This document shows, one piece after another, positions 9,422-63,752 of a DNA stretch of 64,000 bases. Under the pieces are notes generated by a model. It was given only the letters and a program-made list of their open reading frames with translations. It was not told where the DNA came from and did not search any database. The first letter of the stretch is position 1; every line of letters begins with the position of its first letter. The translations under genes and the position numbers were made by a program. Source of the stretch: Macrostomum lignano (taxonomy: Eukaryota); the NCBI GenBank assembly GCA_002269645.1, contig NIVC01001023.1, positions 248,001 through 312,000 of the forward strand, read 5' to 3'.

Positions 9422-9429
9422 CTGTGCTG

Positions 9430-11486: not shown

Positions 11487-11773
11487 GTATGTGACGTTAA
11501 AGTAACCAAATTGTAGTGAGTTGCAAGTGTACTTGTATGCGCCAGTCGCTAGAGCGGGGTTGGGGGGTTGCTATTGTACAGCATTTACGTGCTTTTCACC
11601 CACCCCTGTCTCCATCTTTTATACCCAGTTATGTAACAATCGTTGCATCGTATTTAACCTGCGTATCGATCTAATAAACGCCAAGAGACTTCGTTAACTC
11701 TCAGTTGTATCTCTCTGCCTTAGTCTAAAAAATTGAAGCATATTATTATTTTTAGTTTCCACTGCAGTTGCAG

Positions 11774-22400: not shown

Positions 22401-24577
22401 CTGTCTCTCTCCTTGCCCCTCACCCTACATCACAGCCTGTCTCTCTCCCTGCCCCTCACCCTGCATCCCAGCCTGTCTCTCACCCTGTCCCTCACCCTAC
22501 ATCACAGCCTGTCTCTCTCCCTGCCCCTCACCCTGCATCACAGCCTGTCTCTCTCCCTGCCCCTCACCCTACATCACAGCCTGTCTCTCTCCCTGCCCCT
22601 CGCCCTACATCACAGCCTGTCTCTCTCCCTGCCCCTCACCCTACATCACAGCCTGTCTCCCTCCCTGCCCCTCGCCCTGCATCCCAGCCTGTCTCTCTCC
22701 CTGCCCCTCACCCTACATCACAGCCTGTCTCTCTCCCTGCCCCTCACCCTACATCCCAGCCTGTCTCTCTCCCTGCCCCTCACCCTACATCACAGCCTGT
22801 CTCTCTCCCTGCCCCTCGCCCTGCATCCCAGCCTGTCTCTCACCCTGTCCCTCACCCTACATCACAGCCTGTCTCTCTCCCTGCCCCTCACCCTGCATCC
22901 CAGCCTGTCTCTCTCCCTGCCCCTCACCCTACATCCCAGCCTGTCTCTCTCCCTGCCCCTCACCCTACATCACAGCCTGTCTCTCTCCCTGCCCCTCACC
23001 CTACATCACAGCCTGTCTCTCTCCCTGCCCCTCACCCTGCATCCCAGCCTGTCTCTCTCCCTGCCCCTCACCCTACATCCCAGCCTGTCTCTCTCCCTGC
23101 CCCTCACCCTACATCACAGCCTGTCTCTCTCCCTGCCCCTCACCCTACATCACAGCCTGTCTCTCTCCCTGCCCCTCACCCTGCATCCCAGCCTGTCTCT
23201 CTCCCTGCCCCTCACCCTACATCACAGCCTGTCTCTCTCCCTGCCCCTCACCCTGCATCACAGCCTGTCTCTCTCCCTGCCCCTCACCCTACATCCCAGC
23301 CTGTCTCTCTCCCTGCCCCTCGCCCTACATCCCAGCCTGTCTCTCTCCCTGCCCCTCACCCTACATCCCAGCCTGTCTCTCTCCCTGCCCCTCGCCCTAC
23401 ATCCCAGCCTGTCTCTCTCCCTGCCCCTCACCCTACATCACAGCCTGTCTCTCTCCCTGCCCCTCGCCCTACATCCCAGCCTGTCTCTCTCCCTGCCCCT
23501 CGCCCTACATCACAGCCTGTCTCTCACCCTGCCCCTCACCCTACATCCCAGCCTGTCTCTCTCCCTGCCCCTCACCCTACATCACAGCCTGTCTCTCTCC
23601 CTGCCCCTCGCCCTACATCCCAGCCTGTCTCTCTCCCTTCCCCTCACCCTACATCACAGCCTGTCTCTCCCTTCTCCTCACCCTACATCACAGCCTGTCT
23701 CTCTCCCTGCCCCTCACCCTACATCACAGCCTGTCTCTCCCTTCTCCTCACCCTACATCGCAGCCTGTCTCTCTCCCTGCCCCTCACCCTACATCACAGC
23801 CTGTCTCTCTCCCTGCCCCTCACCCTACATCACAGCCTGTCTCTCTCCCTGCCCCTCACCCTGCATCCCAGCCTGTCTCTCTCCCTGCCCCTCACCCTGC
23901 ATCCCAGCCTGTCTCTCTCCCTGCCCCTCACCCTACATCACAGCCTGTCTCTCTCCCTGCCCCTCACCCTGCATCACAGCCTGTCTCTCTCCCTGCCCCT
24001 CACCCTACATCACAGCCTGTCTCTCTCCCTGCCCCTCGCCCTACATCACAGCCTGTCTCTCTCCCTGCCCCTCGCCCTACATCCCAGCCTGTCTCTCTCC
24101 CTGCCCCACCCTACATCCCAGCCTGTCTCTCTCCCTGCCCCTCGCCCTACATCCCAGCCTGTCTCTCTCCCTGCCCCTCGCCCTACATCCCAGCATGTCT
24201 CTCTCCCTGCCCCTCACCCTGCATCACAGCCTGTCTCTCTCCCTGCCCCTCACCCTACATCACAGCCTGTCTCTTTCCCTGCCCCTCGCCCTACATCCCA
24301 GCCTGTCTCTCTCCCTGTCCCTCGCCCTACATCCCAGCCTGTCTCTCTCCCTGCCCCACCCTACATCCCAGCCTGTCTCTCTCCCTGCCCCTCACCCTAC
24401 ATCACAGCCTGTCTCTCTCCCTGCCCCTCACCCTACATCACAGCCTGTCTCTCTCCCTGCCCCTCGCCCTACATCCCAGCCTGTCTCTCTCCCTGCCCCT
24501 CGCCCTACATCACAGCCTGTCTCTCACCCTGTCCCTCACCCTACATCACAGCCTGTCTCTCTCCCTGCCCCTCACCC
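19490..24577. repeat. 5.1-kb satellite, 36-bp monomer CCCAGCCTGTCTCTCTCCCTGCCCCTCACCCTACAT, with a 678-bp higher-order repeat in the 5' half
   Basis: A diagnostic 33-bp variant monomer recurs at 20306, 20699, 20984, 21377, 21662 and 22055 (alternating spacing 393/285). Confidence 0.97.
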
Positions 24578-25599
24578 TCGGGCTCGCTTTTGAAAACCCG
24601 CAGTGCCGAATATCAAAGGCAGTACATTTTACAGTCAACGAGAACGCACAGGCGCAATGCAAAGCAGTGAATGGTGTGAGCTGGGCAGGGTTGGCACTCA
24701 AGCAGTTTGTCTGTGCCGCTGTTGGGCAGCCATCAACCCCCCCCCCTCCAGAGCATTCGCTGCGAGTCTTCTTTTGTCACGCGTTCGCAGGCTGCTGGCT
24801 CGGCCCTCAAACCTCAGCTTCGCCATTGTCCTCTGGGCATTGAGCTCAGCTGGTCTGGAGCTGCTTGGACAGCTGGGGTCTGGGCGAGTAGAGGCCGCTG
24901 TTTTTTCCGCTCCTGTGTGAGCGCAAGTACAGCGCACAGCCCCAACCCCAGCCCTCAACTCATGGCTGGGCGAAGCACAGAGGAAGGAGAGACAGGAGAT
25001 GCAGAGGCCGCACACAGCAGCCCAGCTGCACACAGCGGTGCCTCATCAGCTCTGCCCCATTGTCCAAAAATCACTGCACAAATGTCATCAGCTGTAATAA
25101 TAAGCAGTAGGTTAAATTAATATACTACTACTGAAAATTTTGGCAGTAGCTAGTATAAACAAAAAAAGCAATTTGTAAGCAATAAAAAGGTAAAGCGTGA
25201 AACTGGTGATTTCAGAGCAGCACAAATATTCATGACAATTTTTTGAACATTCGCAATATAGCATGACCCATTCACCCTGCTGCACAAACTGAAATTTAAA
25301 ATATAAATAAATATATATCCAGCAATCAAACTTTGAAAAACTAACTTGTGCGATTAAACTGAGTGGCAGACAGCAGGGCAGTGCAAATTTCAGATAAAAA
25401 AGCTGTGTAAGAAAACGGCACTGCAAAAACATAAGTAGCAATGATGCAATGCACCTTCAGGGCATGCCAATGCAGTTCATGCGGGCGTCTTTGCAGTGGC
25501 TGATTGGGCACAAATTATTGAAAAATCACAAGGATCTGGCAGGCTGGCCCAGCAACTGAGGATCTGGCAGGCTGGCTGCCCAGCAATCCGAAAAGTGCT

Positions 25600-36901: not shown

Positions 36902-37696
36902 TCAAAGCAGGATGCCACACCGTCGGAAGAAGACAGCTGTGATGACCTTGCGGACACTTCTCTCGCGTAGGAATGTGATGGGGTCATCCTTCTCGAAGGC
37001 AATCCACTGCTTGCTCTGGGATTTCGTCTCTAAGCCAAAAAAGTGAACACAAGTTTCATCTCCAGTCAGAATATTGTCCACCCAGTTTGAAGCGCCTGCA
37101 TCAAATTTGTTGAGCATGAAGTTCGCGAACTCAACACGAGCTTGCATCTGGGTCGGGTTCAAATGATGGGGCACCCAACGCGCAGACACTTTCCTCATGC
37201 CCAGATGATCATCCAAGATGGAAATGGCGCTTGAATCCGAAATTCCGACATTTTTCTTGATTTCGCGATCCGTCACTCGTCGATCTTCATCGAGCAGTCT
37301 TCGGACGCTGGCCACTGATGCGTTCGTAATAGTCGAATTGTTCATCATCGTCCAGCTCTAGGCGGCCAGAACGGGAACGACCAAACCGCTTGTACACCAT
37401 CGTCTGGGTTGGGGCTTCATCACCCAATGCTTTTTGAAGCATCTGCAGGCACTCAGGGGCAGATTGGCCAAGTCGAAATTGAACAAGAATTGCGACTCGT
37501 CTGTCACCCTCTGTCAATCGCAGGACAGGGTCTGGTGTTGTATCACTTTTTCGTCCACTGCGTCATCGCATTTTAGTGAAAGGTGCTGAAAATTGACATG
37601 AAAGACTTTAATATCTACTGAAAGAAGTGCATAAAATCTTGTTCTATTTGCTTAAAAGGAAGTTCAATTTTCTGCGAACGTATTTAGCAACCCTCT
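36902..37696 (-). mobile_element. 3'-truncated mariner transposon with a frameshifted transposase
   Basis: HTH region (AILVQFRLGQSAPECLQMLQKALGDEAP), then KVSARWVPHHL and ILTGDETCVHFF. A TIR-like TAGAGGGTTGCTAAATA occurs at the 5' end (about 37681-37697). The rest of the catalytic triad and the second TIR are missing. Confidence 0.88.
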
Positions 37697-44827: not shown

Positions 44828-47800
44828 ATGGACGCCATCAAGAAGAAAATGCTGGCTATGAAGCTGGATAAGGAGAATGCAATGGACAGGTAATAATGCT
44901 TTTGGAATGCAATGAAGCAATTAGTCACGTATATGTACGACCTATCAATTAAGTTCTTGATCTTGTTCTTGGTCTTAATCTCGTAATTTAAGCCTTTAAT
45001 ATTATATTATTCAGATAAAATAAAAAATTGTAAATGGAAAGTCAAAATTACACGTAACGTTTAGTGTTCAATAATTATCTAATTTAATTTCTAATGCAAA
45101 GTCCACATTTTTACATTCCAGAGCCGATCAGGTAGAAACGAAGCTTAAAGAAAAGGAAGATGAGATGACAAAGAAGGAAGAAGAAATGGGTGAACTGCAG
45201 AAAAAGTTTTCACAGCTGCAGCAGGAACTTGATACGGCACAGGAGTCTCTGGCAGGTGCTAACACAAACCTGGAGGCCACTGAAAAGAGGGCTAATGATG
45301 TGAGTGTTTTGCTTGCTACACAATTTTGTTAAAGCAATTTTTTCCTAGAATTTTTTATTGCAATTAATTAGTTCACAGAGCTTAAGTATCTTCACAATTT
45401 TTTAAAACTCGTTGTCAAGGATTTGTTAAAATGATAACACTCGCGCAGATTTAACTTGCCACGTGACTTAATTTTCGCTTATTTTTATTCTTCACTTCCG
45501 TAGTTTGACTTCTTTACTACGCTACACAACATTTTGTATCAGTATTTCTGACGCGATCAGTATGGCCAATTCCGGACAATCTCAAAGTGTTTTGTCGATA
45601 CTAAAGCAGAAAATGCAGACGCTGCGTAAGGAATTAGACGCGGTTACAGAAGAGCTGGAAAATAAAGACAATGAGCTCGCAGAAGAGGAGAACAAAAAAG
45701 CAGAAGTAGGTGGCTACCTGTTGAATAAGTCAATTTCTTTATTTTTTTATAATTAACTAAATTTCTTTCTTCAGTTTTTATATTAGTTACAAAAAATTCT
45801 TCATTATTTTTTTACTGAACTGTTTGATAACATTTCAAAAAAATTAATTTCTTACTAGAATTCTGAAGCCTGAATAAAGAATGGAAGTTCGAAGGAAAAT
45901 GTATAAATTAATTTAATTTGTAAAATTCCATTGAAATTCATTGATATTTTCTAGAGGTATATCTGATATCAGCATTTTATACCAGGCCCATATTCCATTT
46001 TTCTTTTAAAAGTGGCTTTACTGCTTCGATCAGTAGAGATTCAAAAATTAGAATGATTTGTATGATAAATGCATTTTGCAATTATTTTCTAAATCTGTCA
46101 TCAAAAAATCAATCAAAATCAATAAAAAATCAATTTAATTTTTTGCAAATCACAGCATTGTTTCAATAGGTTTATTATAAATCATTATTGAACATTATAA
46201 ACGCAACTATATTTATTTATAAAGCAATAAAATGATCAACTATACTTAATTTTTAAGATTTGTTTATTTGTTTGTTTGCTTGTCTGTAACACTCTTGTTA
46301 TACTACTATTTTAACGCGAAACATTATTACTAATATCATTATTATTATTACTATTATTATTAATATTTTTAAAATTTTATTAAAACGAAGTCAAAATTAG
46401 ATAAGTGAATTTCAGTCTATAATAGATAAAAGTTTTATGAAATTTTCACCATTCACAGGCCGAGGCCGAGGTGCAGGCTCTGACTCGCCGCATCCGGTTG
46501 ATCGAGGAGGATCTCGAGCAGACTGAGACCCGACTCACCGAGGCCACCCAGAAACTTGAGGAGGCCAGCAAGGCTGCGGACGAGAGTGAGCGGTAAGAAG
46601 ACTCAAAGTTTTCCTATTATTAAATAAAACAAATGACTTTGTTTATTATTGCGTTTCTACGTTTAAAAGCTTCACGTGATTTTCTTTTTTTCAATTTTTA
46701 TAATTCATATTTACTTTACTTTCCTTTGCTTGTATTTTTGCCGTTTTGAGTGCTCAGTACTCAATCACATAGATGAAAATCTAAAACTCTACTCGCTTTT
46801 GGAATCCAACTAAACGCGGCGATCCTGCAGCGCCCTGAAGGTGCTGGACAGCCGCCAGACCGCCGAGGACAGCCAATTGGAGAGTCTGGAACGACAGACT
46901 GATGAAGCCACTGAGCTGGCTGCTGAGAACGAGCAGCGACAAGCAGAGGTGACGCCCCGCCCTCCTTCTGCAATTTGCTCCCGCCGCTCTTTGCAGCCGG
47001 CACAGTTTGATTTCCTTCAGCTCAATTCAATGCATTTTAATCGATCGCTTTAACCATACAATAAAAAATAGTTTGCGCGCTAACTTCCATTGATCCTAAT
47101 GGTGACGGCTGGTCAATGACAGTCTGTATTTCAGGGGTCGGCAAACTTATTTTACCTGAATTGCCTGATAGAGAATCCTGCTCATGACTGCGGGCCAGAT
47201 GACAGCTAGAATAAATCATGGGGAATAGAGGAGAGAAAGAGGAGATGAGAAAATAGATGGGATGAGAGATGGAAGGAGAGATGAGAGGATAAGAGGGAGG
47301 GAGAGAGAGGAGAGATGAAGGAATAGGGGAAGACAGGAGAGGAGGGGGAGAGGGGAGAAGAGTGGAGAAGGGGGAGATGAGAGGAGAAAGGACAGAAGGG
47401 GGGAGAAGAGGGGAGAGGAGAGAAGAGTGGAGAAGGGGGAGGAGAGAGATGAGAGGAGATCACAGGAGAGAGGAAAGAAGGAGAAGAAGAGAGGGGAAGA
47501 GGAGAGAGGAGGGGAGCTGAGAGAAGGGGAAGAGAGGAGAGAAGAGGAGAGAGGAGGAGAGCTGAGAGAAGGAGAGAAGAGACAAGAGGGGGGAGAGGAG
47601 AGAGAAGAGAACCGTGAAGACCTTGAGCGGGGCCGGATTGCTATTGTGAAGTTTCAAAGGACCCGAGAGTATCGAATAGAGGGGGTTGTTGGGCCGGAGC
47701 TCGCCGAAACCCCGATCTGTATTGTGTTTTTTGCACTAAAAAGCTGCTTGAATATTTTAGTACTGTATGTACTTGTATGGCGTGCCAGTAGCCTATACGG

Positions 47801-50800
47801 CTACCTACTGTAAGTAGCTCTAACCGCTTTTTTTACGACGCAGAAATTACAGAAGAAAACATTTTTTTGTTCAGAAAATGCATTTTCATCGCATTCAAAT
47901 CGTAATTATTAAAGTCTTATTGGAAATTAAAGTTCCAATTCGAAACCAGCAGTTTTGCGATAAAAATGCAACGCGATTTTGCGATTTATAACAAAATCTT
48001 AAGTTAAACGTAATGACATGCTATTTATAAATAATCTATTATAACAAATAAGTGCTATAAAATTAGACAAAGGTTTACCTCTCTAACCCATAACGGTTTG
48101 CCTGCTTTAAAATTGGCTGCGATAGATGAAAAACTCATTGCACCTGAGCTCAGCGTCACGACACCGCGCAGTTTTAGCTCAGGTTGCACTCGACCAATTT
48201 TAAAAACAAAATCCACCGCAGAGGTCGCAAGGTGCTTGAGAACCGCTCCATCGCTGATGATGAGCGAATCAACACGCTGGAGGAGCAGCTCAAAGAGGCC
48301 AAGTACATCGCCGAGGACGCCGACCGGAAGTACGATGAGGCGGCCAGGAAGCTGGCCATCACCGAGGGCGACCTTGAGCGGGCCGAGTCGCGTCTTGAGA
48401 GCGCCGAGAGGTGATGAGGCTGCGTTTGAAGGAAGCTGACTTAAGAGCACAGATACTTGAAACACTGGATGGGCCGCTCGCTTTAGTTAGTGACAACTGC
48501 TAACGTACTTGTAAAGTCAGGTATAATATGGCATGATTTTGATTAGTTTCAACAAGTTATTGTCTATGGCTAGAACCGAAAAAACACAATTAGAACGCAC
48601 TTAGGGGCGTAGCCAAGGGGGCAGGGGGTTCCTCTAGTTGGTGCTGGCGCCCCTTGGTGCTGGCGCCCCTTGGTGCTGGCGCCCCTTGGTGCTGGCGCCC
48701 CTTGGTGCTGGCGCCCCTTGGTGCTGGCGCCCCTTGGTGCTGGCGCCCCTTGGTGCTGGCGCCCCTTGGTGCTGGCGCCCCTTGGTGCTGGCGCCCCTTG
48801 GTGCTGGCGCCCCTTGGTGCTGGCGCCCCTTGGTGCTGGCGCCCCTTGGTGCAAGCAATATTTGCAAAGACATCAGGCTGAAGCAAACAAACTTCATTGC
48901 CTACATCTAGATAGCGAGAGGCCCATCCAATGTTCGGAATGAGTTCAATCTGTGACCGAGAGTCCTTCCTAGTGGCAGAATCTGAAGCGTTTACCCTGCC
49001 CAACGCATGCCCTCATCTTTGGCAACAAACTTTTTTTTTGCGAATAACTTAATCATATCTAACACGCTTGTTTACCACACAGTTTGTAAATTTTTAAACA
49101 CTGATTCAGTGTTGCATGCTTGATTTTCTGCTTGACTGTGATGTACTAACCTTGCATCGTGTCCACCTGGAGCAGGTGTACAAGCGCTACTCAGAGGTGG
49201 ACAAAGAGGTGGACGAGGCCGAGGAACGCGCCTCTGTGGCCACCGCCAAGGCGCGTCAGCTCCGCGATGAGTTGACCATCGTGAACATCAATCTGAGGTC
49301 GTTGCAGTACAGCGAGGAGAAGGTCTGAAATTCTCATGCTCACCAGCTATTGGTGTAGGGGGGGGGTGGCAGAGGTTCAAAGCGTTGACGGACAACAAAA
49401 GTACACGCAGAAGGTATCTCTGCTTTTCAGCAAGGGAAACATGCGACAATGGCATGCTGCAATAATGTTTATAACCTGTTGCTTTTTGAGTAAGAATTTT
49501 ATGAGCATATACAATTCAAACATGCTGATGGTTGCGTTGACATGTCAGTTTGTTACTCGAGTTGATACTATTGCTTATTGATTATTGTTCGCGCCTAAAT
49601 GCCAAAAAATTGTTTTTAATGTTTGTATCCTGGTGTAATCCTCGTTTTCGCCGCTCAAATGCAACTTGGAATTCTATTAACGCACTTACTGTATCTTTTA
49701 ATCTGAAACCGCCACTCTGATCCTAAATTCTGATCATTAAACCCTAATCCAGATCCCCAGACCCACTCTGATCCCAATCCAGATCCTCAAACCCACTCTG
49801 ATCCCAATCCAGATCCCCAAACCCACTCTGATCCCAATCCAGATCCCCAAACCCACTCTGATCCCAATCCAGATCCCCAAACCCACTCTGATCCCAATCC
49901 AGATCCCCAAACCCACTCTGATCCCAATCCCGATCCCCAAACCAACTCTGATCCCAATCCCGATCCCCAAACCCACTCTGATCCCAATCCAGATCCCCAA
50001 ACCCACTCTGATCCCAATCTAGATCCTCAAACCCACTCCAGATCCTCAAACCCACTCCAGATCCTCAAACCCAATCCAGATCCCCAAACCCACTCTGATC
50101 CCAATCCAGATCCTCAAACAAACTCTGATCCCAATCCAGATCCTCAAACAACTCTGATCCCAATCTAGATTCCCAAACCCACTCTGATCCCAATCCCGAT
50201 CCCCAAACCCACTTTGATCCCAATCCAGATCCCCAAACCCACTCTGATCCCAATCCCGATCCCCAAACCCACTCTGATCCCAATCCAGATCCCCAAACCC
50301 ACTCTGATCCCAATCCAGATCCCCAAACCCACTCTGATCCCAATCCAGATCCTCAAATCCACTCTGATCCCAATCCAGATCCCCAAACCCACTCTGATCC
50401 CAATCCAGATCCTCAAACCCACTCTGATCCCAATCCCGATCCCCAAACCAACTCTGATCCCAATCCCGATCCCCAAACCCACTCAGATCCCAATCTAGAT
50501 CCTTAAACCCACTCTGATCCCAATCCAGATCCCCAAACCCACTCTGATCCCAATCTAGATCCCCAAACCCACTCTGATCCCCATCCCGATCCCCAAACCC
50601 ACTCTGATCCCAAGCCGCTAATCCAACCAAATCCTGCAGCAAAATCCTTGAGCTCGAAGAGGAGCTCCGAGTGGTCGGCAGCAACATGAAGTCCTTGGAG
50701 ATCTCTGAGCAGGAAGCCGCCCAGCGTGAGGAGTCCTACGAGGAGACCATCCGGGACTTGTCCGAAAGACTCAAGACCGTGAGACCCGCCTGCATGAGTC

Positions 50801-53800
50801 GCGAGAAAGACATTCAGAAAACTTGTTTTATTCAAAAAATATTGATTTCAGTTGCCAGGCCAGGCGTTTCCCCCCGATTCATTTCTACAGCATGCCATGG
50901 TTGCTTGTTTTTTTTGCGCGTGTTTTAGAATCAGTCTTTGTTTTGAGCTGCATGAAATGCACCATGAAACCATAAACACAGCATCCTCTTTGCATGCCCA
51001 ACTGAAACTAAATGCAGGCCTCAAGCAAGGAGACTCACCTGGAGAAGCACATTCAGGAGCTGAAGTTCAAAGTAGACGAGGTAGCTGCTTGTACTCTTTT
51101 TTTCTTCAAATTTTCTTATCCCAGACTCTCGCATGCAGCTCGGTTGAACAGGCGTTTCCATCATTGCTGATTACTGCTTGGCAACTTATTTTTATGCCTA
51201 GACTTAACTTAACTACGTACATTTACTAACCGTCTCCTTTATTCTCCACATCTTCCATTCTCATCAAATTTATTCACCTGATCCCAATTCTCTCCGCCCC
51301 TACCTGTAAATTACCTTCGATCCTGATTCTCCCCTGTAAATTACTCTGTTTCTTATTATCTAAAATCAGAGAAATTCCTTTGATCCCAATTCTTTCTTTT
51401 GAATTCCCCTGATTCCAATTCTTCCACTGTAAATTCCCCTGTTTCCAATTCTTCCCTTTGAACTCCCCTGATCCCAATTCTTCCACTGTAAATTCCCCTG
51501 ATCCCAATTGCTCCCCTGTAAATTCCCCTGATCCCAATTGTTCCCCTGTAAATTCCCCTGATCCAATTGCTCCCCTGTAAATTCCCCTGATCCCAATTGC
51601 TCCCCTGTAAATTCCCCTGATCCCAATTCTTCACCTGTAAATTCCCCTGATCCCAACTGCTCCCCTGTAAATTCCCCTGATTCCAATTCTTCACCTGTAA
51701 ATTCCCCTGATCCCAATTGCTCCCCTGTAAATTCCCCTGATCCCAATTGTTCCCCTGTAAATTCCCCTGATCCAATTGCTCCCCTGTAAATTCCCCTGAT
51801 CCCAATTGCTCCCCTGTAAATTCCCCTGATCCCAATTGTTCCCCTGTAAATTCCCCTGATCCCAACTGCTCCCCTGTAAATTTCCCAGATCCCAATTCTT
51901 CACCTGTAAATTCCCCTGATCCCAATTCTTCACCTGTAAATTCCCCTGATCCCAACTGCTCCCCTGTAAATTCCCCTGATTCCAATTCTTCACCTGTAAA
52001 TTCCCCTGATCCCAATTGCTCCCCTGTAAATTCCCCTGATCCCAATTGCTCCCCTGTAAATTCCCCTATAATTTCCCCCTGTAAATTACTCTAAACCTAA
52101 TATCCAGACTTCTATTCCCTTTCACTTCTCCATCCAGTCAGTATCTTTTCCTCTCCTTTTTTCATGGATCTTCCACCATCGAATCCTGTATTATTTTTTG
52201 ACTAACCATGATTTTTGCAATAACTCCTATAAAAACGGAATGCCTCTAAAACACCTTGGATTGATCTGGCCTGGCGATGAATAACAAGAAACAAAGGTTA
52301 GACTTTAAAATACTCGAACATTAGCTAGCAGTTGGTGTTTAACAATCTCACAAAAAACGCACGAAACACCTCAGGCTGAGCAGCGAGCCACAGAGGCCGA
52401 AAGGCAGGTTGCCAAGCTGCAGAGCGAGGTGGACCGACTGGAGGGTACGACTGAGCACTGTGCTCAACTGCTGCTGTGCCTGCCCAGTCCCAGATTATTA
52501 TTTTGCTTGCTTGCTAAACTGCCATAAAGTTTACAATACTTCTCAGCTGCATGCGAGGGTTTTTGGGTGTTTTGTACTTTCTTTTGGTGCGTGCAATCAA
52601 GTGAACTGGATTCCAGCTACCCCAGACGATTCCAGCTACACCTGACGATTCCAGCTACTACCTGACAATTCCAGCTACCACCTGACAATTCCAGCTACCA
52701 CCTGACAATTCCAGCTACCACCTGACAATTCCAGCTACCACCTGACAATTCCAGCTACCACCTGACAATTCCAGCTACCACCTGACAATTCCAGCTACCA
52801 CCTGACAATTCCAGCTACCACCTGACAATTCCAGCTACCACCTGACAATTCCAGCTACCACCTGACAATTCCAGCTACCACCTGACAATTCCAGCTACCA
52901 CCTGACAATTCCAGCTACCACCTGACAATTCCAGCTACCACCTGACAATTCCAGCTACCACCTGACAATTCCAGCTACCACCTGACAATTCCAGCTACCA
53001 CCTGACAATTCCAGCTACCACCTGACAATTCCAGCTACCACCTGACAATTCCAGCTACCACCTGACAATTCCAGCTACCACCTGACAATTCCAGCTACCA
53101 CCTGACAATTCCAGCTACCACCTGACAATTCCAGCTACCACCTGACAATTCCAGCTACCACCTGACAATTCCAGCTACCACCTGAAAATTCCAGCTACCT
53201 CATGCTCACTATTTTTTTGTTGAGTACTGTTTGTTGTCACTGTGCATGGTTTGTTTTATCCCGCATCTCAATAACCTGCATGCAAACTGACAACCCCAGG
53301 CAGAGCAGAGGGCACTCACCGCAGAACGAGAGGCCCTGCAAATGCAGAAGGAGCTTGATGAGGCCGAAGGTAAAGAAACTGAGAAATGTCGGAGGAAATT
53401 AGAAGTTGTGGATAGGACCCTGTTGGATTCGGGATTCACTGTAGGTCGGCGCCCCTGTCTCTTAGGTTGGCGCCCCTGTCTCTTAGGTTGGCGCCCCTGT
53501 CTATTTGATTGGTTGGCGTCCCTGTCCCTTAGGTTGGCGCCCCTGTCCCTTAGGTTGGCGCCCCTGTCTCTTAGGTTGGCGCCCCTGTCTCTTAGGTTGG
53601 CGCCCCTGTCTCTTTGATTGGTTGGCGCCCCTGTCCCTTAGGTTGGCGCCCCTGTCCCTTAGGTTGGCGCCCCTGTCCCTTAGGTTGGCGCCCCTGTCCC
53701 TTAGTTTGGCGCCCGTCTCTTAGGTTGGCGCCCCTGTCCCTTAGGTTGGCGCCCGTCTCTTAGGTTGGCGCCCCTGTCCCTTAGGTTGGCGCCCCTGTCC

Positions 53801-55394
53801 CTTAGGTTGGCGCCCCTGTCCCTTAGGTTGGCGCCCTTGTCTCTTGGGTTGATGAAAATAAAATTTGAAGTTTTCGAAGCCAGCCTCAACCTCAACCCTG
53901 CATCAATCCGGTGAACTCATCTCTACAGTTGAGCTGCTGCAGAAGAAGGACAGCCTCCTGCAGCTGAAGGGCCAGCTGGAGAGCTACTACAAAGAGATTG
54001 AGAGCATTTAGGCGGCGTTACAGCACAGGTAGATGCAGGTGGTTCACCTCAAACACGGCTTGGCTAACTCAAAAATATCATAATTATTATGGAAAGTTAT
54101 GATACATTATTATTTGGTTTTAATTAGTTTACTCTCAAATTGTTAATTCAATCTGCATTTAACCTGCCGCTAGTCTTTAACTTTGTTTGCTTTATTGCAC
54201 TGATTGCTACCGGTAATTTTATTAAGTGTGAATAATTTTTATTTATACAATATTGCTACGTGCAAAATATTAACCTGATTTTGTTTAGTTATTCTATCTT
54301 AGTAAGAGCGTAATCTTAGCATTGACACTTTAAATACCAATTTCACTGTGTTCCTCGTACTGTAGATATCTCGGAGTCCCACACCCTCGAATCCCACTGC
54401 TGTAAATTCCACACCCTCAAATCCCACATCCTCAATTCCCACTGATTCAAATCCCACACCCTCAAATCCCACTGCTTCAAATCCCACTGCTTCAAATCCC
54501 ACACCCTCAAATCCCACTGCTTCAAATCCCACTGCTTCAAATCCCACACCCTCAAATCCCACCGCTTCAAACCATACACCCTCAAATCCTACTGCTTCAA
54601 ATCCCACACCCTCAAATCCCACTGCTTCAAATCCCACACCCTCAAATCCCACTGCTACAAATCCCACACCCATGCAAAAATCCCACACCCTCAAATCCCA
54701 CTGCTTCAAATCCCACTGCTTCAAATCCAACTGCTACAAATCCCACACCCTCAAATCCCACTGCTTCAAATCCCACTGCTTCAAATCCCACTGCTTCAAA
54801 TCCCACACCCTCAAATCCCACTGCTTCAAATCCCACTGCTTCTAATCCCACTGCTTCAAATCCCCACACCCTCAAATCCCACTGCTTCAAATCCCACACC
54901 CTCAAATCCCACTGCTACAAATCCCACACCCATGCAAAAATCCCACTGCTTCAAATCCCACTGCTTCAAATCCCACTGCTTCAAATCCCACTGCTTCAAA
55001 TCCCACACCCTCAAATCCCACTGCTTCAAACCCCACACCCTCAAATCCCACTGCTTCAAATCCCACACCCTCAAATCCCACTGCTTCAAATCCCACACTC
55101 TCAAATCCCACTGCTACAAATCCCACACCCATGCAAAAATCCCACACCCTGAAATCTCAACTCCTAGAAATCCCATCCCACACTATCAAAACCAACTCCC
55201 AGAAATTCCACATTCTAAAATCCCACACCCTCAAAGTCCCACACGCTAAGTTGGCACTCCCCAAAGTCCCAACAGGTGAAACCTCAACCAACCGCATTCC
55301 CCATCCCGCAGACGAGCTCCTGTCCGAGAAGGAACGCTACAAGGGCATCAGCGAAGAACTGGACCAGACCTTTGCCGAGCTCACCGGCTACTGA
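44828..55394 (+). CDS. TPM: Tropomyosin, canonical muscle-type 284-aa isoform (exon set B)
   Basis: Exons 44828-44889, 45122-45299, 46459-46592, 48222-48410, 50640-50778, 52375-52444 and 55312-55394 total 855 nt. Starts MDAIKKKM and ends [12 protein letters not shown]. Confidence 0.97.
45562..45705 (+). CDS. TPM: Tropomyosin alternative first exon (short 252-aa isoforms)
   Basis: [26 protein letters not shown]...KKAE (48 codons). Phase-0 donor GTAGGT joins the exon at 46459. Confidence 0.88.
46831..46948 (+). CDS. TPM: Tropomyosin divergent exon 4A (aa 125-164)
   Basis: 118 bp, phase 2 to 0, [48 protein letters not shown]; 13/39 identical to the canonical segment. Confidence 0.85.
47220..47615. 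repeat. AG-rich low-complexity intronic tract
   Basis: Purine run. Confidence 0.85.
48639..48851. repeat. Intronic minisatellite, 16-bp unit GGTGCTGGCGCCCCTT
   Basis: Near-perfect tandem copies. Confidence 0.95.
49176..49322 (+). CDS. TPM: Tropomyosin divergent fused exon 5/6A (aa 165-213)
   Basis: 147 bp, phase 0 to 0. [49 protein letters not shown]. Confidence 0.85.
49740..50612. repeat. Intronic minisatellite, 30-bp unit CCCAATCCAGATCCCCAAACCCACTCTGAT
   Basis: Directly visible; ends about 28 bp before the acceptor at 50640. Confidence 0.96.
51018..51080 (+). CDS. TPM: Tropomyosin divergent exon 7A (aa 214-234)
   Basis: 63 bp, phase 0 to 0, [32 protein letters not shown]. Confidence 0.8.
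51370..52085. repeat. Intronic minisatellite, 29/30-bp unit GTAAATTCCCCTGATCCCAATTGCTCCCCT
   Basis: Directly visible. Confidence 0.95.
52613..53200. repeat. Intronic near-perfect minisatellite, 20-bp unit ATTCCAGCTACCACCTGACA
   Basis: Long run of identical units with no spacers. Confidence 0.97.
53300..53369 (+). CDS. TPM: Tropomyosin divergent exon 8A (aa 235-258)
   Basis: 70 bp, phase 0 to 1. [23 protein letters not shown]; 12/23 identical to exon 8B. Confidence 0.88.
53446..53845. repeat. Intronic minisatellite, 21-bp unit GGCGCCCCTGT(C/T)(C/T)CTTAGGTT
   Basis: Its reverse complement nearly equals the unit of 3110-3890. Confidence 0.95.
53929..54011 (+). CDS. TPM: Tropomyosin divergent terminal exon 9A (aa 258-284)
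   Basis: 83 bp, phase 1. (V)[26 protein letters not shown]; same length as exon 9B. Confidence 0.85.
54375..55240. repeat. Intronic minisatellite mixing two 15-bp units (CAAATCCCACTGCTT / CAAATCCCACACCCT)
   Basis: Directly visible; degenerates toward the acceptor at 55312. Confidence 0.93.
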
Positions 55395-56674
55395 ACTCGC
55401 AAATCATTTTTTCTGTTTTCTCATTTCACCGCAACAGCTCTCTCTCAGACTTGCTGGCAGACATTTGTTTCGCATATATTTATTTATTTCAGCAAACAGT
55501 CTGTGAAATATTTAATATGATTTTATTCATTCACCTAGCTGCTCTCTTTCGTATCTGCTTTGCTTATTGTCAATCAGTTTAGAATTTATCATTAATCGAT
55601 TTGCAGTGTTCACCCCACAACAGTTAGAAATTGAAGCCACCCTAAACATGTAGTAGCTACAGACTCAAAAACAGACAAATACAGACAACAATATACTCAG
55701 ACTTGAAAGACTCTTTCTGCATAAGCAGAATTTAATTTCTTTTGTTTCAGTTTAAACAAATTGTCACAATCCGACTCCGCAATACGCATTTATTTATTAA
55801 TGTTTATACTAGAAGGCCGAGCTTAAAAAAGATCAATTTTCAGTGAGCTGAGTTAAATTAATACGCAGAGGTCGTCACGATTCACGCCGAAAAGGGGGGC
55901 GGCTTCAGTCGAACAGGGGTTGACAGAGTTGATAACCAATCTGAAGTAGGCATAACAATAATACTAAACCTTGCGATAAAAATACAATGTCCTCAATACG
56001 CTACTGATATTAGCTGGGGGGACAAAAGTAGCATAGTTGGGAAATGGTCAGCTGAGGACGCAGAATACTCCAAAGCGAGTGGAAGTTTAAAAACTAATAA
56101 AACAGATATAAACAACAAAGCATTTTTGAAAAAAAAACTCAAAATCTGTTTTCAGTGATAAAACCTCCTGACAAAGAAAAGCATTGAAACAGTTGGGGAA
56201 ATATTTATTAGCAAAATATATATAGGGAACAAAAACTGCTGAAAAAAACAACTCTGTTTTTTAGCACACGGCTGAAGGCGGGCGGTTGAAAAGCAAGGAG
56301 AGACAAAAATTAAAACAAAATTAGAATAATTTTATGCACTACTGCCAGCCAAATGAGGAGCGCAAGTAGTGAGTTGCGACTTAAAATTGAAGCTAGAACA
56401 AAGACCTGTTCAATACGGAATAACCTAAGATCTGGGTAATGAAATTTAGAAAAAAACAACAATATTTGACAAAAATTTTTATGGTTAAATGACAGTCCAG
56501 GTTTGAATCTTTAAACATCTGTAATGAGCATTCTAAATGTGTCATGACATTAAAATGTAATGGATATAATTGTTGGCATAATAATGCTATTAAAATATGA
56601 CAAGCAAACAGACAAACGTATTGTACTTTGTAAAAAGGACTAAAAAATATTTTGTATCATTTTAAATTTAGGGC

Positions 56675-57810
56675 AATTCTTAGAAATATTCAGGGACGAT
56701 TCCTAGAAACATTCAGGGCTAATTCTTAGAAATATTCAGGGACGATTCCTAGAAACATTCAGGGCTAATTCTTAGAAATATTCAGGGACGATTCCTAGAA
56801 ACATTCAGGGACCATTCCTAGAAATATTCAGGGACAATTCGTAGAAATATTCAGGGACAATTCCTATAAATATTCAGGGCTAATTCTTAGAAATATTCAG
56901 GGACGATTCCTAGAAACATTCAGGGCTAATTCTTAGAAATATTCAGGGACGATTCCTAGAAACATTCAGGGACCATTCCTAGAAATATTCAGGGACAATT
57001 CGTAGAAATATTCAGGGACAATTCCTAGAAATATTCAGGGACAATTCGTAGAAATATTCAGGGACAATTCCTAGAAATATTCAGGGACAATTCCTAGAAA
57101 TATTCTGGGATAATTCCTAGAAACATTCAGGGTCAATTCCTAGAAACATTCAGGGTCAATTCCTAGAAACATTCAGGGACAATTTCTAGAAACATTCAGG
57201 GCCAATTCCTAGAAACATTCAGGGCCAATTCCTAGAAACATTCAGGGACAATTCCTAGAAACATTCAGGGTCAATTCCTAGAAACATTCAGGGCCAATTC
57301 CTAGAAATATTCAGGGTCAATTCCTAGAAACATTCAGGGTCAATTTCTAGAAACATTCAGGGACAATTTCTAGAAACATTCAGGGACAATTTCTAGAAAT
57401 ATTCAGGGACAATTCCTAGAAACATTCAGGGTCAATTCCTAGAAATATTCTGGGACAATTCCTAGAAACATTCAGGGACAATTCCTAGAAACATTCAAGG
57501 TCAATTCCTAGAAATATTCTGGGACAATTCCTAGAAACATTCAGGGTCAATTCCTAGAAACATTCAGGGACAATTCCTAAAAACATTCAAGGTCAATTCC
57601 TAGAAATATTCTGGGACAATTCCTAGAAACATTCAGGGTCAATTCCTAGAAATATTCTGGGACAATTCCTAGAAACATTCAGGGTCAATTCCTAGAAACA
57701 TTCAGGGTCAATTCCTAGAAATATTCTGGGACAATTCCTAGAAATATTCAGGGATAATTCCTAGAAATATTCAGGGACAATTCCCAGAAATATTCAGGGA
57801 CAATTCCTAG
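56675..57810. repeat. Intergenic minisatellite, 23-bp unit CCTAGAAA(C/T)ATTCAGGGACAATT
   Basis: Period 23 (57121/57144). Confidence 0.96.
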
Positions 57811-57878
57811 ATAGCAGCTATCAGGGAAGACTGGGCGATTTCTCAATAAAAACTGTGATACAAAAACAAAAAAGCAAG

Positions 57879-60800
57879 TCAGTCCTGCCGGTGGTTCTCC
57901 GCCGCAGTCGCATCAAAGCCGCGCAACGCCTCGAGATCCTCTTTGTAGTTTAACCGAATTTTGTCGAACGGTTTCGGATCCAAATCTACTATGGCTAGGT
58001 TCATTAGGAGTCCTCGACCGGACACGGGGTCCTTGGCGTGGGCAACGCTGTCTGGCAGCTCGCTAGCTGGCAGGCGGCTGGGGGCAAGGGTGAGCATGAC
58101 TGAGCAGTCCTTGGCAACCAGGGATGTCAGGTAGGCCTCGTAGTGCTGCGCGGACTGGATCACCGACAGCGGCGCCTGCAGCGACTCCACGAAGTCCTTC
58201 AGGCTGCCCTTGGAGCAGTCCCTGCGGGGGTGTGACCGATTCTCATGGATCACTCATGACCGATTCTCATGGATCACTCATGATCGATTCTCATGAATCA
58301 CTCATGACCGATTCTCATGGATCACTCATGATAGATTCTCATGGATCACTCATGATCGATTCTCATGAATCACTCATGATCGATTCTCATGAATCACTCA
58401 TGACCGATTCTCATGAATCACTCATGACCGATTCTCATGAATCTCTCATGACCGATTCTCATGAATCACTCATGACCGATTCTCATGAATCACTCATGAC
58501 CGATTCTCATGAATCACTCATGACCGATTCTCATGAATCACTCAGTGCAGATTCTCATGAATCACTCAGTGCAGATTCTCATGAATCACTCAGTGCAGAT
58601 TCTCATGAATCACTCAGTGCAGATTCTCATAAATCACTCAGTGCAGATTCTCATGAATCACTCAGTGCAGATTCTCATGAATCACTCAGTGCAGATTCTC
58701 ATGAATCACTCAGTGCAGATTCTCATGAATCACTCAGTGCAGATTCTCATGAATCACTCAGTGCAGATTCTCATGAATCACTCAGTGCAGATTCTCATGA
58801 ATCACTCAGTGCAGATTCTCATGAATCACTCAGTGCAGATTCTCATGAATCACTCAGTGCAGATTCTCATGAATCACTCAGTGCAGATTCTCATGAATCA
58901 CTCAGTGCAGATTCTCATGAATCACTCAGTGCAGATTCTCATGAATCACTCAGTGCAGATTCTCATGAATCACTCAGTGCAGATTCTCATGAATCACTCA
59001 GTGCAGATTCTCATAAATCACTCAGTGCAGATTCTCATGAACCACTCAGTGCAGATTCTCATGAATCACTCAGTGCAGATTCTCATAAATCACAAGAGCA
59101 GCTCACCAAGCGGTATCATTGTCCTGCAGGAACTTGACCAGTCGGTTATAATGCGACAGGGTGCCATCAATACCCAGCCGATCAAGCAGCTGAACAGACA
59201 GAATTCGGCCCAGCACACAGTTGATGCTGAGCTGGGTGGGTTGCTGCTGCTGTTGCTGTTGTTGCTGTTGTTCCTCTTGCATCCGCCTTGAGCACAGCTG
59301 CGAGTAGTGCGAATCAGCTGGATAGGAAAATTCCGCAGAAGCTGACACAGGGGCCTCATCAGAGACGGGTAGCGACTTGAACTCATAGGTGAGTGCCTGG
59401 TAGAGGGTCTCCACAAATCCCGCAATCAGCTGCTCGTCTGTCACCTCGGCGTTGGTTGACGAGGAAGATGACGGAGGAATGTCGAAGAACTCGCGGAGAC
59501 AGGCTGCGAGATCGGCTGGAGACTCGTTGCCGACTATGTAGGCTGGGGTGCCATTCTGGGGTGAGTGGAATGGGGTGTGTGCTTTTGAGAAGTTGGCATG
59601 CGTCGATCGACTGAACATCCGACGTCGACGTTGGATATTTCTAGGAAAAAACTTTATTTCTAGGAAAGAGTTTATTGGGATCGGGTGTTTTTGACGAAGA
59701 GTGAATTGGGGTTCATTGTTGTTAGGAATGTGTACTTTGTGACTGTGTTTCTAGGAAAGTTCAAATTGTGGTGGGGTTTTCTAGGAAACAGTGTACATTG
59801 TGATTGAGTTTTCTAGGAAAGAGTGCATATTGGGTTGATTGCTTTTAGAAAAGTGTGCATTGAGGTTGGGTGTTTCTAGGAAAGAGAGTACATTGAGGTT
59901 GGCTGTTTCTAGGAAAGAGTGTACATGGAGATTGAGTGTTTCTAGGAAAGAGTGTACATAGAGATTGGGTGTTTCTAGGAAAGAGTGTACATTGAGGTTG
60001 GGTGTTTCTAGGAAAGAGTGTACATAGAGATTGAGTGTTTCTAGGAAAGAGTGTACATTGAGATTGGCTGTTTCTAGAAAGAGTGTACATTGAGATTGAG
60101 TGTTTCTAGGAAAGAGTGTACATTGAGGTTGGGTGTTTCTAGGAAAGAGTGTACATTGAGATTGGGTGTTTCTAGGAAAGAGTGTACATAGAGATTGGGT
60201 GTTTCTAGGAAAGAGTTTCATTGTGATTAAATATTTCTAGGAAAGAGGGCAGATTAGAGCTAAATGTCTCTAGAAAACGCTGAACATTAGGACTGAGCAA
60301 TTTTTGAGTGGCCTGTGGGTTTCCAAGAAATACAGCACACCTTCGATGGCTGTTCCCAACAAACAGTAAAACTGATAGAGAAGTCACAAATCCTGCCTAC
60401 CTTGAACACTCGCAAATTATTTTGCGGAGTCTGGATCAGCGACATCAGAGCGGATACCATGCGACTTTTAACGCTGAAAAAAACAATAACACAAACGTGC
60501 TTAATATTACGATGCCTGAAATAAAATGAGATCAAGAATTTCAGATGGCAAATTAAGAAAACTCACCCTGAGAACAGGTCGCATGGACAGTATTGACTTC
60601 GGGTCTCGTATTGGCGACCCTTTTTCTAGAGTAAAGGAGAATTCAAAGAAACCAAAGTTAAAAACACTCGTTTAGACCCGATATTAATCACAGTGGCGGT
60701 TACAAAACAAGACCCTCAACTAACCAGATGAAACTGCATCAAACAGAAGCGACACCAGGTTCTGCGGACTTTCTCCTGCACCAAAGTTGACACGGGTATG

Positions 60801-63752
60801 AAGCCTTGCTTTACCTGTGAAAGCAATTTCGACATTATTTACAAATCTTTCAGAAGCAATTCGTGTATTGAGCTACGAGCGAGCGGAAACTGACCAGGGA
60901 CTTCCTTGAAGTTGTCTGGATTGGAAACGAGATATATATATAATGCCATAAAATCTAGACTTCCACATCCAGTAGAGCTCTTAGAAGGCCTTGACTTTTC
61001 CCAAAATTAATCCAGTCCAGGAAGAGCTCTAGGAGTCCATGACATTTTCAAAATTAGCGTTCAGTCTACGAGAACTCTAGAATTAAAGTCAAAGTCCTCG
61101 GCTTTTCGCAGGCTACAGTCCAGTCAAAAGAAAGCTTAAGGAATCCATGACTTTTCCTAAACTAGCGTCCAGTCCAGGGACAGCTTTAGGAGTCCTTGGC
61201 TTTTCCTAAACTAGCGTTCAATCCAGGGAGAGCTCTAGGAGTCCTTGGCTTTTCCTAAACTAGCGTCCAGTCCAGGGAGAGCTCTAGGAGTCCTTGGCTT
61301 TTCCTAAACTAGCGTCCACTCAAGGAAAGCTCAAACAGCCAATGTTCGAAGTGTGATCGAAAGAGAAATCTACTTCTATAAAAATGTCATATTTTCAGTT
61401 TAATGATTTAACGTAAAAAGTTTATTTAATAAAAAACAGATATTTCAACTTATTTCATATTCCATTTATTAGTAATTCCAGATTTTATTATTAAAAATTA
61501 TAATCCTAAGTATAAGTTTCTAAAAATAAATTGCCTTGAATTTTATGCCCCCCCCCCACATTGTGCGAGAGGTGGACAGCTGCACTGACTGACTCATCGT
61601 GAGACAAGGCAAGGCTGAGGTGGTGGGGTCACAGGAACAATAAAGAGAGGAGAGAGAGATGGGCTAAGGAAACCTCGAGACTCAAACGAGCACATTGGCA
61701 CAATAATAGTAGGTAGGCCAATTTTTAGAAAGCTATAAATAAACTGACTGGACAAAAGCATTGCACACACACAGACCAGCAGAGCAAGAATGATGCAGCT
61801 ACAGAAGCTTCTCAATCTGGCGCTATTGCTAGCAGTTTTGCTAGCAGGCAGAGCACACAGCTCAGATGATGCAGGACAGCCAGCACCGGAGTCAGACTCT
61901 CCAGACTCCGAGGATTTCACTCCGGAGCAGCTAGCCAAGGCCCGGTCCAATTTGGACAAACTTTTCGACGAGAAACTGGACGCAAATCGAGACGGGAAGG
62001 TGAGCCGTCAGGAGCTGATTGCATGGCTGGCAGAAGCCAACAGACAGCAGGCTGCTAGAGAGCTGGATGAGACCTGGCAAGCCTACAACCTGACCACTGA
62101 TGGAGCAGACAGCTTCCTGGACTGGGACAGTCACGCTGCTCGCCGAGCTGCAAGCGTGGACACTGGAACCGCTTCCGGCTCGGAAGAGGAAAAGGCAAAA
62201 GCCAAGCAACAGCAGCAGGCGGAGTTCCAAGCCGAGGTGAAACGAGCTATTGATGAGGCTAGCAAGGAGACTGGGATTGACAAAGCCGGCATCAATGTTG
62301 GCGTGCCGCAGATGCCACCTCCTGAGACACCGGAGCCGACAAAGTCAACAAGAACGGAAGCTGACGGCGGCGGCAGCGAGGCGGAGCATCAGCATCGGCT
62401 GGCGGTGGAACTCGGCCGCGATCGCCGACGCTGGGAAGCCGCCGACGAGGACGGCGACGGCCGGTTGAATCGGCGCGAATTTGCGGCGTTCGCCCTGGCC
62501 GAAGGGGCCGCCGAGGGCGCTGCCGCAGCCTCGCCCGCAATGCGCCGGGTGCTGGCGCTGGAGGCCATGGAGCGGCTGGACTCGGACGGCGATGGCCGAG
62601 TGTCTCTGGCCGAGTTCCTGGCCGGAGCACCGGCCGCAACCGATCCCAAAGCGCCGGACGAGGACGCCAAGAATTTCAAGGACGTCTGGGATGTGAACAA
62701 GGACGGCTATATGGACGCGGAGGAGATGGAGAAGATGCTGGATTATGTGGACTCGGCTGGACCGGCTCACAGCAAGGAGGCTGAGGCTGAAGCTGAGGCG
62801 GCTGAGCTGGCTGATGAAGCTGACAGGCTGATGAAGACGGTCGATTCAAACCTGGACGGCGGTCTGAGCAAAGACGAGGTGCTGGCGAGACTGACGGACT
62901 TCGCCGGCTCCGCTGCTACGGACTACGGCAGCTCGATTGGCATCCATGATGAGCTGTGACGCCTCACAGCTGACTGAGTAGGACTCAATATGCTGAGTAG
63001 GACTGAAGATGCTGAGTAGGACTGAAGATGCTGAGTAGGACTAAAGATGCTGAGTAGGACTGAATATGCTGAGTAGTACTGAAGATGCTGAGTAGGACTG
63101 AAGATGCTGAGTAGGACTGAATATGCTGAGTAGTACTGAAGATGCTGAGTAGGACTGAAGATGCTGAGTAGGACTAAAGATGCTGAGTAGGACTGAAGAT
63201 GCCGAGTAGGACTCAATAGCTGACTAGGACTGAAGATGCTGAGTAGTACTGAAGATGCTGAGTAGGACTGAAGATGCTGAGTAGGACTCAATATGCTGAG
63301 TAGAACTCAAGATGCTGAGTAGTACTGAAGATGCTGAGTAGGACTCAAGATGCTGAGTAGAACTCAAGATGCTGAGTAGGACTTAAGATGCTGAGTGGGA
63401 CTCTTGATGTCAACAAGTGCTCGAATAAATACAATAAATAAGTCATTAACAATTTTCGATGAGTCTAATGTAACAGTTCCTATTTTCGTATTTTATTTTT
63501 TCACTTCTTTTGTCCCCTAAAGGAAACTGGAAAAGTACAAATTCACTAACTCACCTTGAGTTCTATGCACAGAGACGGCCGACCTTCGAGCACGAACTTG
63601 TCAAGTTCGATAGGCAGGAAAGCCACATCCGATGTGATGATGGCCTCGTGATAATGCACATCGATGTCCTTTACCAGCCGGTTTTGGGGACGGAAGGGGC
63701 GCATCAGGGTGTTGATCTGGGTCAAGTACTCAGTGTCCGCGTGCAGCACTTC
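57879..63752 (-). CDS. IPPK: Inositol-pentakisphosphate 2-kinase; 5' exons lie outside the window
   Basis: Exons 63752-63555, 60814-60725, 60625-60567, 60473-60401, 59555-59107 and 58221-57879, with consistent phases (0,0,2,0,2). Motifs RPSLCIELK-VKQGF, CRFCLMQ, YCPCDLFSG, QNNLRVFKNG, AKDCSVML and VDLDPKP. Confidence 0.92.
58235..59092. repeat. Intronic 24-bp minisatellite in two homogeneous domains
   Basis: ATTCTCATG(A/G)ATCACTCATGACCG up to about 58540, then ATTCTCATGAATCACTCAGTGCAG. Confidence 0.96.
59640..60250. repeat. Intronic minisatellite, about 33-bp unit TTTCTAGGAAAGAGTGTACATTGAGGTTGGGTG
   Basis: Directly visible, degenerate at both ends. Confidence 0.92.
60960..61325. repeat. Degenerate 49-bp tandem repeat
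   Basis: TTTTCCTAAACTAGCG at 61201 and 61250; more diverged copies lie upstream. Confidence 0.8.
61790..62959 (+). CDS. CREC-family (calumenin/reticulocalbin-like) secretory-pathway EF-hand protein; intronless, nested antisense in an IPPK intron
   Basis: 389-aa ORF with a signal peptide, EF loops DANRDGKVSRQE, DEDGDGRLNRRE, DSDGDGRVSLAE, DVNKDGYMDAEE and DSNLDGGLSKDE, and C-terminal HDEL. TATA-like TATAAATA at 61734 and AATAAA at 63424. Confidence 0.92.
   Translation: MMQLQKLLNLALLLAVLLAGRAHSSDDAGQPAPESDSPDSEDFTPEQLAKARSNLDKLFDEKLDANRDGKVSRQELIAWLAEANRQQAARELDETWQAYNLTTDGADSFLDWDSHAARRAASVDTGTASGSEEEKAKAKQQQQAEFQAEVKRAIDEASKETGIDKAGINVGVPQMPPPETPEPTKSTRTEADGGGSEAEHQHRLAVELGRDRRRWEAADEDGDGRLNRREFAAFALAEGAAEGAAAASPAMRRVLALEAMERLDSDGDGRVSLAEFLAGAPAATDPKAPDEDAKNFKDVWDVNKDGYMDAEEMEKMLDYVDSAGPAHSKEAEAEAEAAELADEADRLMKTVDSNLDGGLSKDEVLARLTDFAGSAATDYGSSIGIHDEL
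62975..63400. repeat. 19-bp minisatellite GATGCTGAGTAGGACTGAA in the predicted 3' UTR of the CREC gene
   Basis: Period 19 (63001/63020). Confidence 0.95.

Follow-up and report, generated by a model that had tools for sequence, protein, structure and literature searches.

Does a single locus of the flatworm Macrostomum lignano encode two tropomyosins that differ almost as much as paralogs, and if so, how are its exons combined and where did they come from? The locus lies in a stretch of 64,000 nucleotides (nt) of contig NIVC01001023.1, which was analysed as a whole and is called the window in the following; positions are given in window coordinates. An earlier note on this DNA had proposed that a second C-terminal half of near paralog-level divergence is interleaved within the tropomyosin gene, and this proposal is borne out by our analysis: the locus carries two complete, interleaved and divergent exon sets for residues 126–284, designated set A (divergent) and set B (canonical), which are 32 % identical and both match the tropomyosin family in Pfam. 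With a probability of about 75 %, we favour an explanation in which the gene is the ortholog of flatworm SmTpmII/tpm-2. Each of the exons 4–9 would have been duplicated in tandem in a flatworm ancestor, the copies diverging into two co-adapted sets, so-called “internal paralogs”, that are chosen by mutually exclusive splicing. Set B would represent the conserved muscle-type C-terminal half, and set A a fast-evolving coiled-coil half that is probably non-muscle or cytoskeletal. The Macrostomum lineage would then have lost the introns 4B/5B, 5A/6A and 6B/7B, and the A path would be used mainly with the alternative first exon 1b.

Two exon sets behind a common exon 3

The five exons of set A were found where the earlier note had placed them (Table 1), each flanked by AG upstream and GT downstream, the last one ending in TAG, and none of them interrupted by a stop codon in the phases required. 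The equal length claimed for the two coding sequences holds as well, with A path and B path each summing up to 855 nt, and sequence reading confirmed the claimed genomic order 4A, 4/5B, 5/6A, 6/7B, 7A, 8B, 8A, 9A, 9B. With the fused exons split, this order reads 4A 4B / 5B 5A / 6A 6B / 7B 7A / 8B 8A / 9A 9B. Given the three fusions, lengths of 118, 71, 76, 63, 70 and 83 nt are recovered for both sets, and the phases are equal at each position. The vertebrate genes TPM1–4 show the same ancestral borders, as their exon 3 (134 nt) is followed by exons of 118, 71, 76, 63, 70 and 83 nt, and they likewise feature a 1a/1b promoter choice. In the window, a TATAAAAG motif is located approximately 145 nt upstream of exon 1a. 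Exon 1b, situated between exons 2 and 3 at the position where it is also found in Hymenolepis and Schistosoma, is the predicted start of a short form from an internal promoter.

Table 1. Coding exons of the tropomyosin gene in the window and of the Hymenolepis weldensis tpm-2 locus L001 (local coordinates).
Locus	Exon	Position	Strand	Length	Remarks
Window	1a	44828–44889	+	62 nt	ATG at 44828; long or muscle-type start
Window	2	45122–45299	+	178 nt	long form only
Window	1b	45562–45705	+	144 nt	alternative first coding exon; 48 amino acids, own ATG, phase 0, GT donor
Window	3	46459–46592	+	134 nt	sole coding exon present in all paths
Window	4A	46831–46948	+	118 nt	
Window	4/5B	48222–48410	+	189 nt	fused 4B+5B (118+71 nt); separate exons in Hymenolepis
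Window	5/6A	49176–49322	+	147 nt	fused 5A+6A (71+76 nt)
Window	6/7B	50640–50778	+	139 nt	fused 6B+7B (76+63 nt)
Window	7A	51018–51080	+	63 nt	
Window	8B	52375–52444	+	70 nt	
Window	8A	53300–53369	+	70 nt	
Window	9A (coding part)	53929–54011	+	83 nt	stop TAG
Window	9B (coding part)	55312–55394	+	83 nt	stop TGA; canonical end
L001	1b	6001–6141		141 nt	
L001	3	6218–6351		134 nt	
L001	4A	6437–6554		118 nt	
L001	4B	6610–6727		118 nt	
L001	5B	6817–6887		71 nt	
L001	5A	7013–7083		71 nt	
L001	6A	7158–7233		76 nt	
L001	6B	7425–7500		76 nt	
L001	7B	7582–7644		63 nt	
L001	7A	7754–7816		63 nt	
L001	8B	8536–8605		70 nt	
L001	8A	8753–8822		70 nt	
L001	9A	8999–9081		83 nt	
L001	9B	9380–9462		83 nt	

The homology of the two sets is supported by comparisons of their translations. 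BLASTP of the two C-terminal halves of 160 amino acids (aa) each yielded 51 identical residues out of 157 (32 %) in a gapless alignment with an E-value of 1e-21, in good agreement with the approximately 50 of 159 counted by hand in the earlier note. Set A alone matches the Pfam tropomyosin family PF00261 with 87.2 bits (cut-off 38.6) over profile positions 84–241, in register with set B, which scores 197.2 bits over positions 83–241. The complete A path of 855 nt would encode a long form of 284 aa that aligns gaplessly to the B product. A manual count on the translation of residues 126–284 shows that 38 of the 46 heptad a and d positions of set A are hydrophobic or alanine, which is far beyond chance. 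Acidic residues occupy positions 137 (d) and 218 (a), both of which are likewise acidic in vertebrate tropomyosin. The C-terminus of set A departs from the conserved muscle pattern DELxxEKExYKxISxELDxTFxEL.. and is therefore not a muscle-type end.

A database search with the canonical isoform ranks flatworm tropomyosins first. The partial M. lignano model A0A1I8FBT4 in UniProt (P0060 among the protein records compared here) differs from the set B exons by a single mismatch in its exonic parts, and it is mis-modelled at its 5′ end as well as at the junction between 4/5B and 6/7B. This match places the window in M. lignano, in a very close relative or in a paralogous copy of the gene.

The same layout in tapeworms and flukes

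The tpm-2 locus of Hymenolepis weldensis, taken from JBQVRA010000420.1 and read base by base, features AG/GT borders throughout and presents all twelve exons 4–9 in an A/B order identical to that of the window. As in the window, exon 3 measures 134 nt and exon 1b lies between exons 2 and 3, while the summed lengths of neighbouring exons of the same set equal the sizes of the fused exons (118+71=189, 71+76=147 and 76+63=139 nt). In contrast to the window, every intron is kept and tiny, with only about 3.5 kb from exon 1b to exon 9B, and the locus possesses a large extra exon (LFSDY...SGTLI), to which we return below. In Schistosoma bovis (locus L002), which is closely related to S. mansoni, the exons 4A, 4B, 5B, 5A, 6A and 6B follow each other as in the window, the rest of the gene falling into an assembly gap, and the tapeworm gene models P0002, P0005 and P0006 string A-like and B-like exons together in window order. 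The duplicated sets and their alternating order, observed in these three flatworm lineages, most likely predate the split between Macrostomorpha and the lineage of tapeworms and flukes. The window set B is 75 % identical to the cestode set B, and the comparisons indicate that set B is strongly conserved and set A fast-evolving.

The recurrence of the interleaved order also bears on the notion that set A is a gene of its own inside introns of the tropomyosin gene, or that the assembly has merged two paralogous genes, as a region this rich in minisatellites can confuse assembly. The phase 1 start of exon 4A, however, makes it dependent on the final two bases of exon 3, the sequence between exons 3 and 4A contains no start exon, and the same order recurs in H. 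weldensis and S. bovis, whose assemblies are independent. We give hardly any credence to either version of this idea.

A close counterpart is TpmII of Schistosoma mansoni (Smp_031770), which comprises 17 exons A–Q with a common exon E and the tandem pairs F/G, H/I, J/K, L/M, N/O and P/Q, the members of which are never used together (PMC4026961). In both genes, one common exon (exon 3 in the window) precedes a region in which each later coding exon is present as a tandem pair, and both combine, as predicted for the window, a muscle-type product of 284 aa with shorter non-muscle isoforms by means of alternative first exons. They differ in that the S. mansoni exons are separate, with pairs reported to be about 50 % identical, and can therefore be mixed, whereas the window lacks three introns, its sets share 32 % identity and exons 4–7 are locked by their reading frame into two paths. 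The general statement in the earlier note that usually only a few positions of a tropomyosin gene are duplicated hence fails for flatworms, since all six positions after exon 3 are duplicated in S. mansoni TpmII (PMC4026961) and recur in identical A/B order in H. weldensis. The situation is different in vertebrate TPM1–4, where some positions are duplicated per gene (2a/2b, 6a/6b, 9a–d) and the remaining diversity resides in four separate genes.

Tropomyosin “internal paralogs” are a published phenomenon (summarised in PMC3342872 and PMC9741552), with which the window shares recurrent tandem exon duplication and would share mutually exclusive use and the assignment of copies to long and short promoter isoforms. 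According to one review, most bilaterian lineages acquired their exon duplicates independently, and the copies are “assigned” to two promoter-defined isoforms (PMC3342872). Close to the system described here are the cestode tpm-2 locus and, grouped with it, the high-molecular-weight (HMW) Tpm2 of Mesocestoides corti; HMW isoforms are restricted to muscle in cestodes (PMC4015340). Our literature search found no paper describing the tropomyosin gene of M. lignano. The species covered by the primary study, Irimia et al. 2010 (Mol Biol Evol 27:1504), reportedly do not include Macrostomum. The layout represents a flatworm form of a known phenomenon, apparently undescribed in this species, and its local twist is the three exon fusions.

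Public gene models reflect this architecture poorly. In the models P0002, P0005, P0006, P0007 and P0060 from Hymenolepis, S. bovis and Macrostomum, exons that exclude each other are directly concatenated or connected by residues translated from introns, or the sets are truncated, and the database “proteins” of 390–437 aa attributed to this gene are annotation artefacts. The large extra exon of H. weldensis, which does not have coiled-coil character (..RPEPEG..EPLFSDYG..SDDDY..LNSGTLIQLA..), is located at positions 4886–5629 of L001 between exons 2 and 1b. It is kept in tropomyosin models of tapeworms, flukes and even the annelid Dimorphilus (P0011, P0016, P0017) and appears to represent a third N-terminal variant of an atypical kind. 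Its motif EPLFSDYG, the only one searched for, has no match in the window.

Probable intron loss and the reading frame of exons 4–7

The introns missing from the window are those between neighbouring exons of the same set, namely 4B/5B, 5A/6A and 6B/7B. Their absence puts the borders of the two sets out of step, so that mixing A and B across exons 4–7 leads out of frame. Joining 4A to 4/5B results in a stop after 5 codons, joining either 4A or 5/6A to 6/7B in a stop after 3 codons, and the combinations of 4/5B with 5/6A and with 7A run into stops at codon 33 and codon 15, respectively. Across exons 4–7, the frame is open only for all-A or all-B; mixed products with their early stops would presumably be degraded. 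As both paths are in phase 0 after exon 7, exons 8A/8B and 9A/9B are frame-compatible in any combination. The unfused exon borders equal those of the vertebrate TPM genes, which argues for intron loss in the lineage of the window rather than intron gain elsewhere.

Two inverted repeats are found in the introns of this part of the gene. The arms at 49430–49467 and 50880–50917 are 38 nt long, fold with −41.9 kcal/mol including G-U pairs and bracket exon 6/7B together with its upstream minisatellite, while those at 48461–48482 and 48913–48934 (22 nt, 91 % complementary) bracket a 16-mer minisatellite between 4/5B and 5/6A. By a rough estimate, both are stronger than expected by chance; the number of inverted repeats in the gene, nine compared to five and three in two control regions, is not clearly above background. 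As a hypothesis only, the 38-nt duplex could help to loop out and skip exon 6/7B for the A path, or the intronic inverted repeats could instead be the ends of repeat-bearing insertions. Taking these observations together, we tentatively propose, at somewhat less than even odds, that the fusions converted six exon pairs, each of which could be chosen independently, into a binary switch that is locked by the reading frame for exons 4–7. Such a switch, perhaps assisted by RNA pairing of the intronic 38-nt duplex, would constitute a step between combinatorial splicing and two genes, on top of an alternating exon order that would be at least as old as the ancestor shared by Macrostomorpha, tapeworms and flukes.

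Nearly each intron of the 3′ half of the gene, as well as its flanks, contains its own minisatellite array of 15–30-nt units in 13–50 copies, a density that is in keeping with the M. lignano genome. Such arrays were located at 48638–48852, 49746–50613, 51372–52067, 52610–53199, 53442–53851, 54390–55126, 56666–57811 and 58238–59093, and similar ones occur through much of the window, among them a CT-rich array at about 19300–24843 and a GC-rich one at 10466–11516. The intron between 4A and 4/5B furthermore contains a purine-only, GA-rich tract of approximately 370 nt (47240–47610), which is open in all three forward frames and mimics a coding sequence rich in Glu, Arg and Gly.

The convergent neighbour of the tropomyosin gene on the reverse strand (57879–59618) has Pfam matches to inositol-pentakisphosphate 2-kinase (IPPK) in two exons; it features a poly-glutamine run and an intron filled by a 24-nt minisatellite, the last of the arrays listed above. 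Further downstream, a single open reading frame (ORF) of 389 aa on the forward strand (61790–62959), which matches EF-hands several times and terminates in HDEL, looks like a calcium-binding protein of the reticulocalbin/calumenin type resident in the endoplasmic reticulum. Upstream, the window contains ankyrin-repeat and protein-kinase-domain ORFs that probably belong to one gene (11768–15656, forward strand), a 6-phosphogluconolactonase/glucosamine-6-phosphate isomerase-like ORF (6335–7758, forward strand) and a transposase fragment of the Tc3/mariner type (36902–37348, reverse strand), the weak match of which stays below the Pfam cut-off.

Probable use of set A and what the locus means

Which start the A path is combined with can be approached through the isoforms described for S. 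mansoni. TpmII.4 (855 bp, from MEHIKKK to ELTGN*) is of the muscle type and runs from exon 1a to a 9B-type end, whereas the non-muscle TpmII.3 (699 bp) occurs in all life stages and was cloned with primers for MKLQIDQ.. and ..MFTEVENI* (PMC4026961). Both primer ends have their counterparts in the S. bovis model P0007, namely in exon 1b and in the last exon of the A type, which indicates that in a fluke an A-type end is joined to an internal-promoter start. By analogy with TpmII.3, the A path of the window would most likely be used mainly with exon 1b, resulting in a short form of about 252 aa that shares only exon 3 with the muscle form of 284 aa. That the two forms may have no other exon in common is suggested by the existence of exon 1b in the window, by the joining of 1b to an A-type end in TpmII.3 and by the assignment of exon copies to promoter isoforms in the review.

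A different picture, the one drawn in the earlier note, would emerge if both sets were freely combined with both promoters, making a 284-aa long form with the A half, identical to the muscle form over residues 1–125, a major product. The phases permit this, as exon 3 can be spliced to 4A just as well as to 4/5B and each path then amounts to 855 nt, and S. mansoni does mix starts and exon sets to some degree. The cloned S. mansoni isoform with an A-type exon 9 nevertheless begins in exon 1b, the review assigns the exon copies to promoter-defined isoforms (PMC3342872), and database protein searches returned no long-A protein from M. lignano or any other flatworm. We therefore consider free combination unlikely, though a rival to be taken seriously.

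Several observations weigh against the explanation favoured here. At the level of sequence identity, the window set A does not resemble the Hymenolepis set A (28 %) more closely than any of the B sets, with 33 % to the cestode B and 32 % to the window B. Since the overall similarity of 28–36 % among flatworm A sets is uninformative on orthology, the assignment of set A rests on the exon order and on an R-Q signature, the only one shared by A-type exons 4. Exon choice in S. mansoni is partly combinatorial, with TpmII.3 reported to retain an epitope of the exon 4B type and TpmII.7 pairing another start with set B (PMC4026961), so that promoter coupling is not strict in this species; the S. mansoni model P0017 likewise combines 4B with a 5A-type exon, i.e. 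mixing occurs in flukes with separate exons. No transcript support for set A was found in M. lignano, and a protein search with the set A half matched only a single record, P0001 (UniParc UPI0007A1BDAB). A full HMMER scan with exon 5/6A against 1.84 billion representatives gave no match, which is a weak result owing to the short query of 49 aa and a library clustered at 50 %. Finally, AATAAA is absent from the forward strand between the 9A stop and 9B (54012–55311), its first downstream occurrence being at 56096, past 9B. One may speculate that a possible GT donor at 54030/54031, 19 nt past the 9A stop, could let exon 9A splice onward, in which case a 3′ end located further downstream might serve the A transcripts.

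P0001 itself deserves a closer description. It exists in UniParc only, maps to approximately 52357–54030 and 58144–59238 of the window and reproduces the 8A>9A junction. Its content consists of sequence from the intron preceding 8B, a frameshifted 8B, part of 8A, 9A through its stop and antisense sequence of the kinase gene. By manual reading, two frameshifting differences separate it from the window, an insertion of 4 nt in 8B and one additional T at the 9A stop, and the gap in its kinase-antisense part mismatches the GT-AG intron inferred for IPPK. Considered as cDNA evidence for the splices 8A>9A and 54030>58144, the record was dropped on account of its UniParc-only status, its start within an intron, the frameshifts and the IPPK antisense portion. 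It is probably an ab initio gene model on an error-prone earlier assembly.

Taken at face value, the lack of a transcript or reliable protein record, the high divergence of set A (28–33 % to everything compared) and the missing canonical poly(A) signal after 9A would fit a relic, that is, duplicated exons that have dropped out of the mRNA of this species. All five set A exons (481 nt), however, are open with intact AG/GT borders and exact ancestral lengths and phases, the stop stands at the homologous position, and both the heptad core and a Pfam score of more than twice the cut-off are maintained. Unused sequence would not have retained such features since the split from tapeworms and flukes, which makes a relic very improbable in our view, and we infer that both sets are spliced into mRNA, in the mutually exclusive manner outlined at the outset. 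Annotation of this gene requires at least two, and probably at least four, isoform models.

These findings extend the “internal paralog” architecture of flatworm tropomyosin to an early-branching, free-living flatworm. As parasitic and free-living flatworms share the layout, the alternating order of the exons is ancient in its entirety and not something peculiar to parasites. With its three fused exons, the locus moreover provides a clean natural case of intron loss hard-wiring the joint use of alternative exons by means of the reading frame, a case that bears on how sets of alternatively spliced exons turn into genes of their own.

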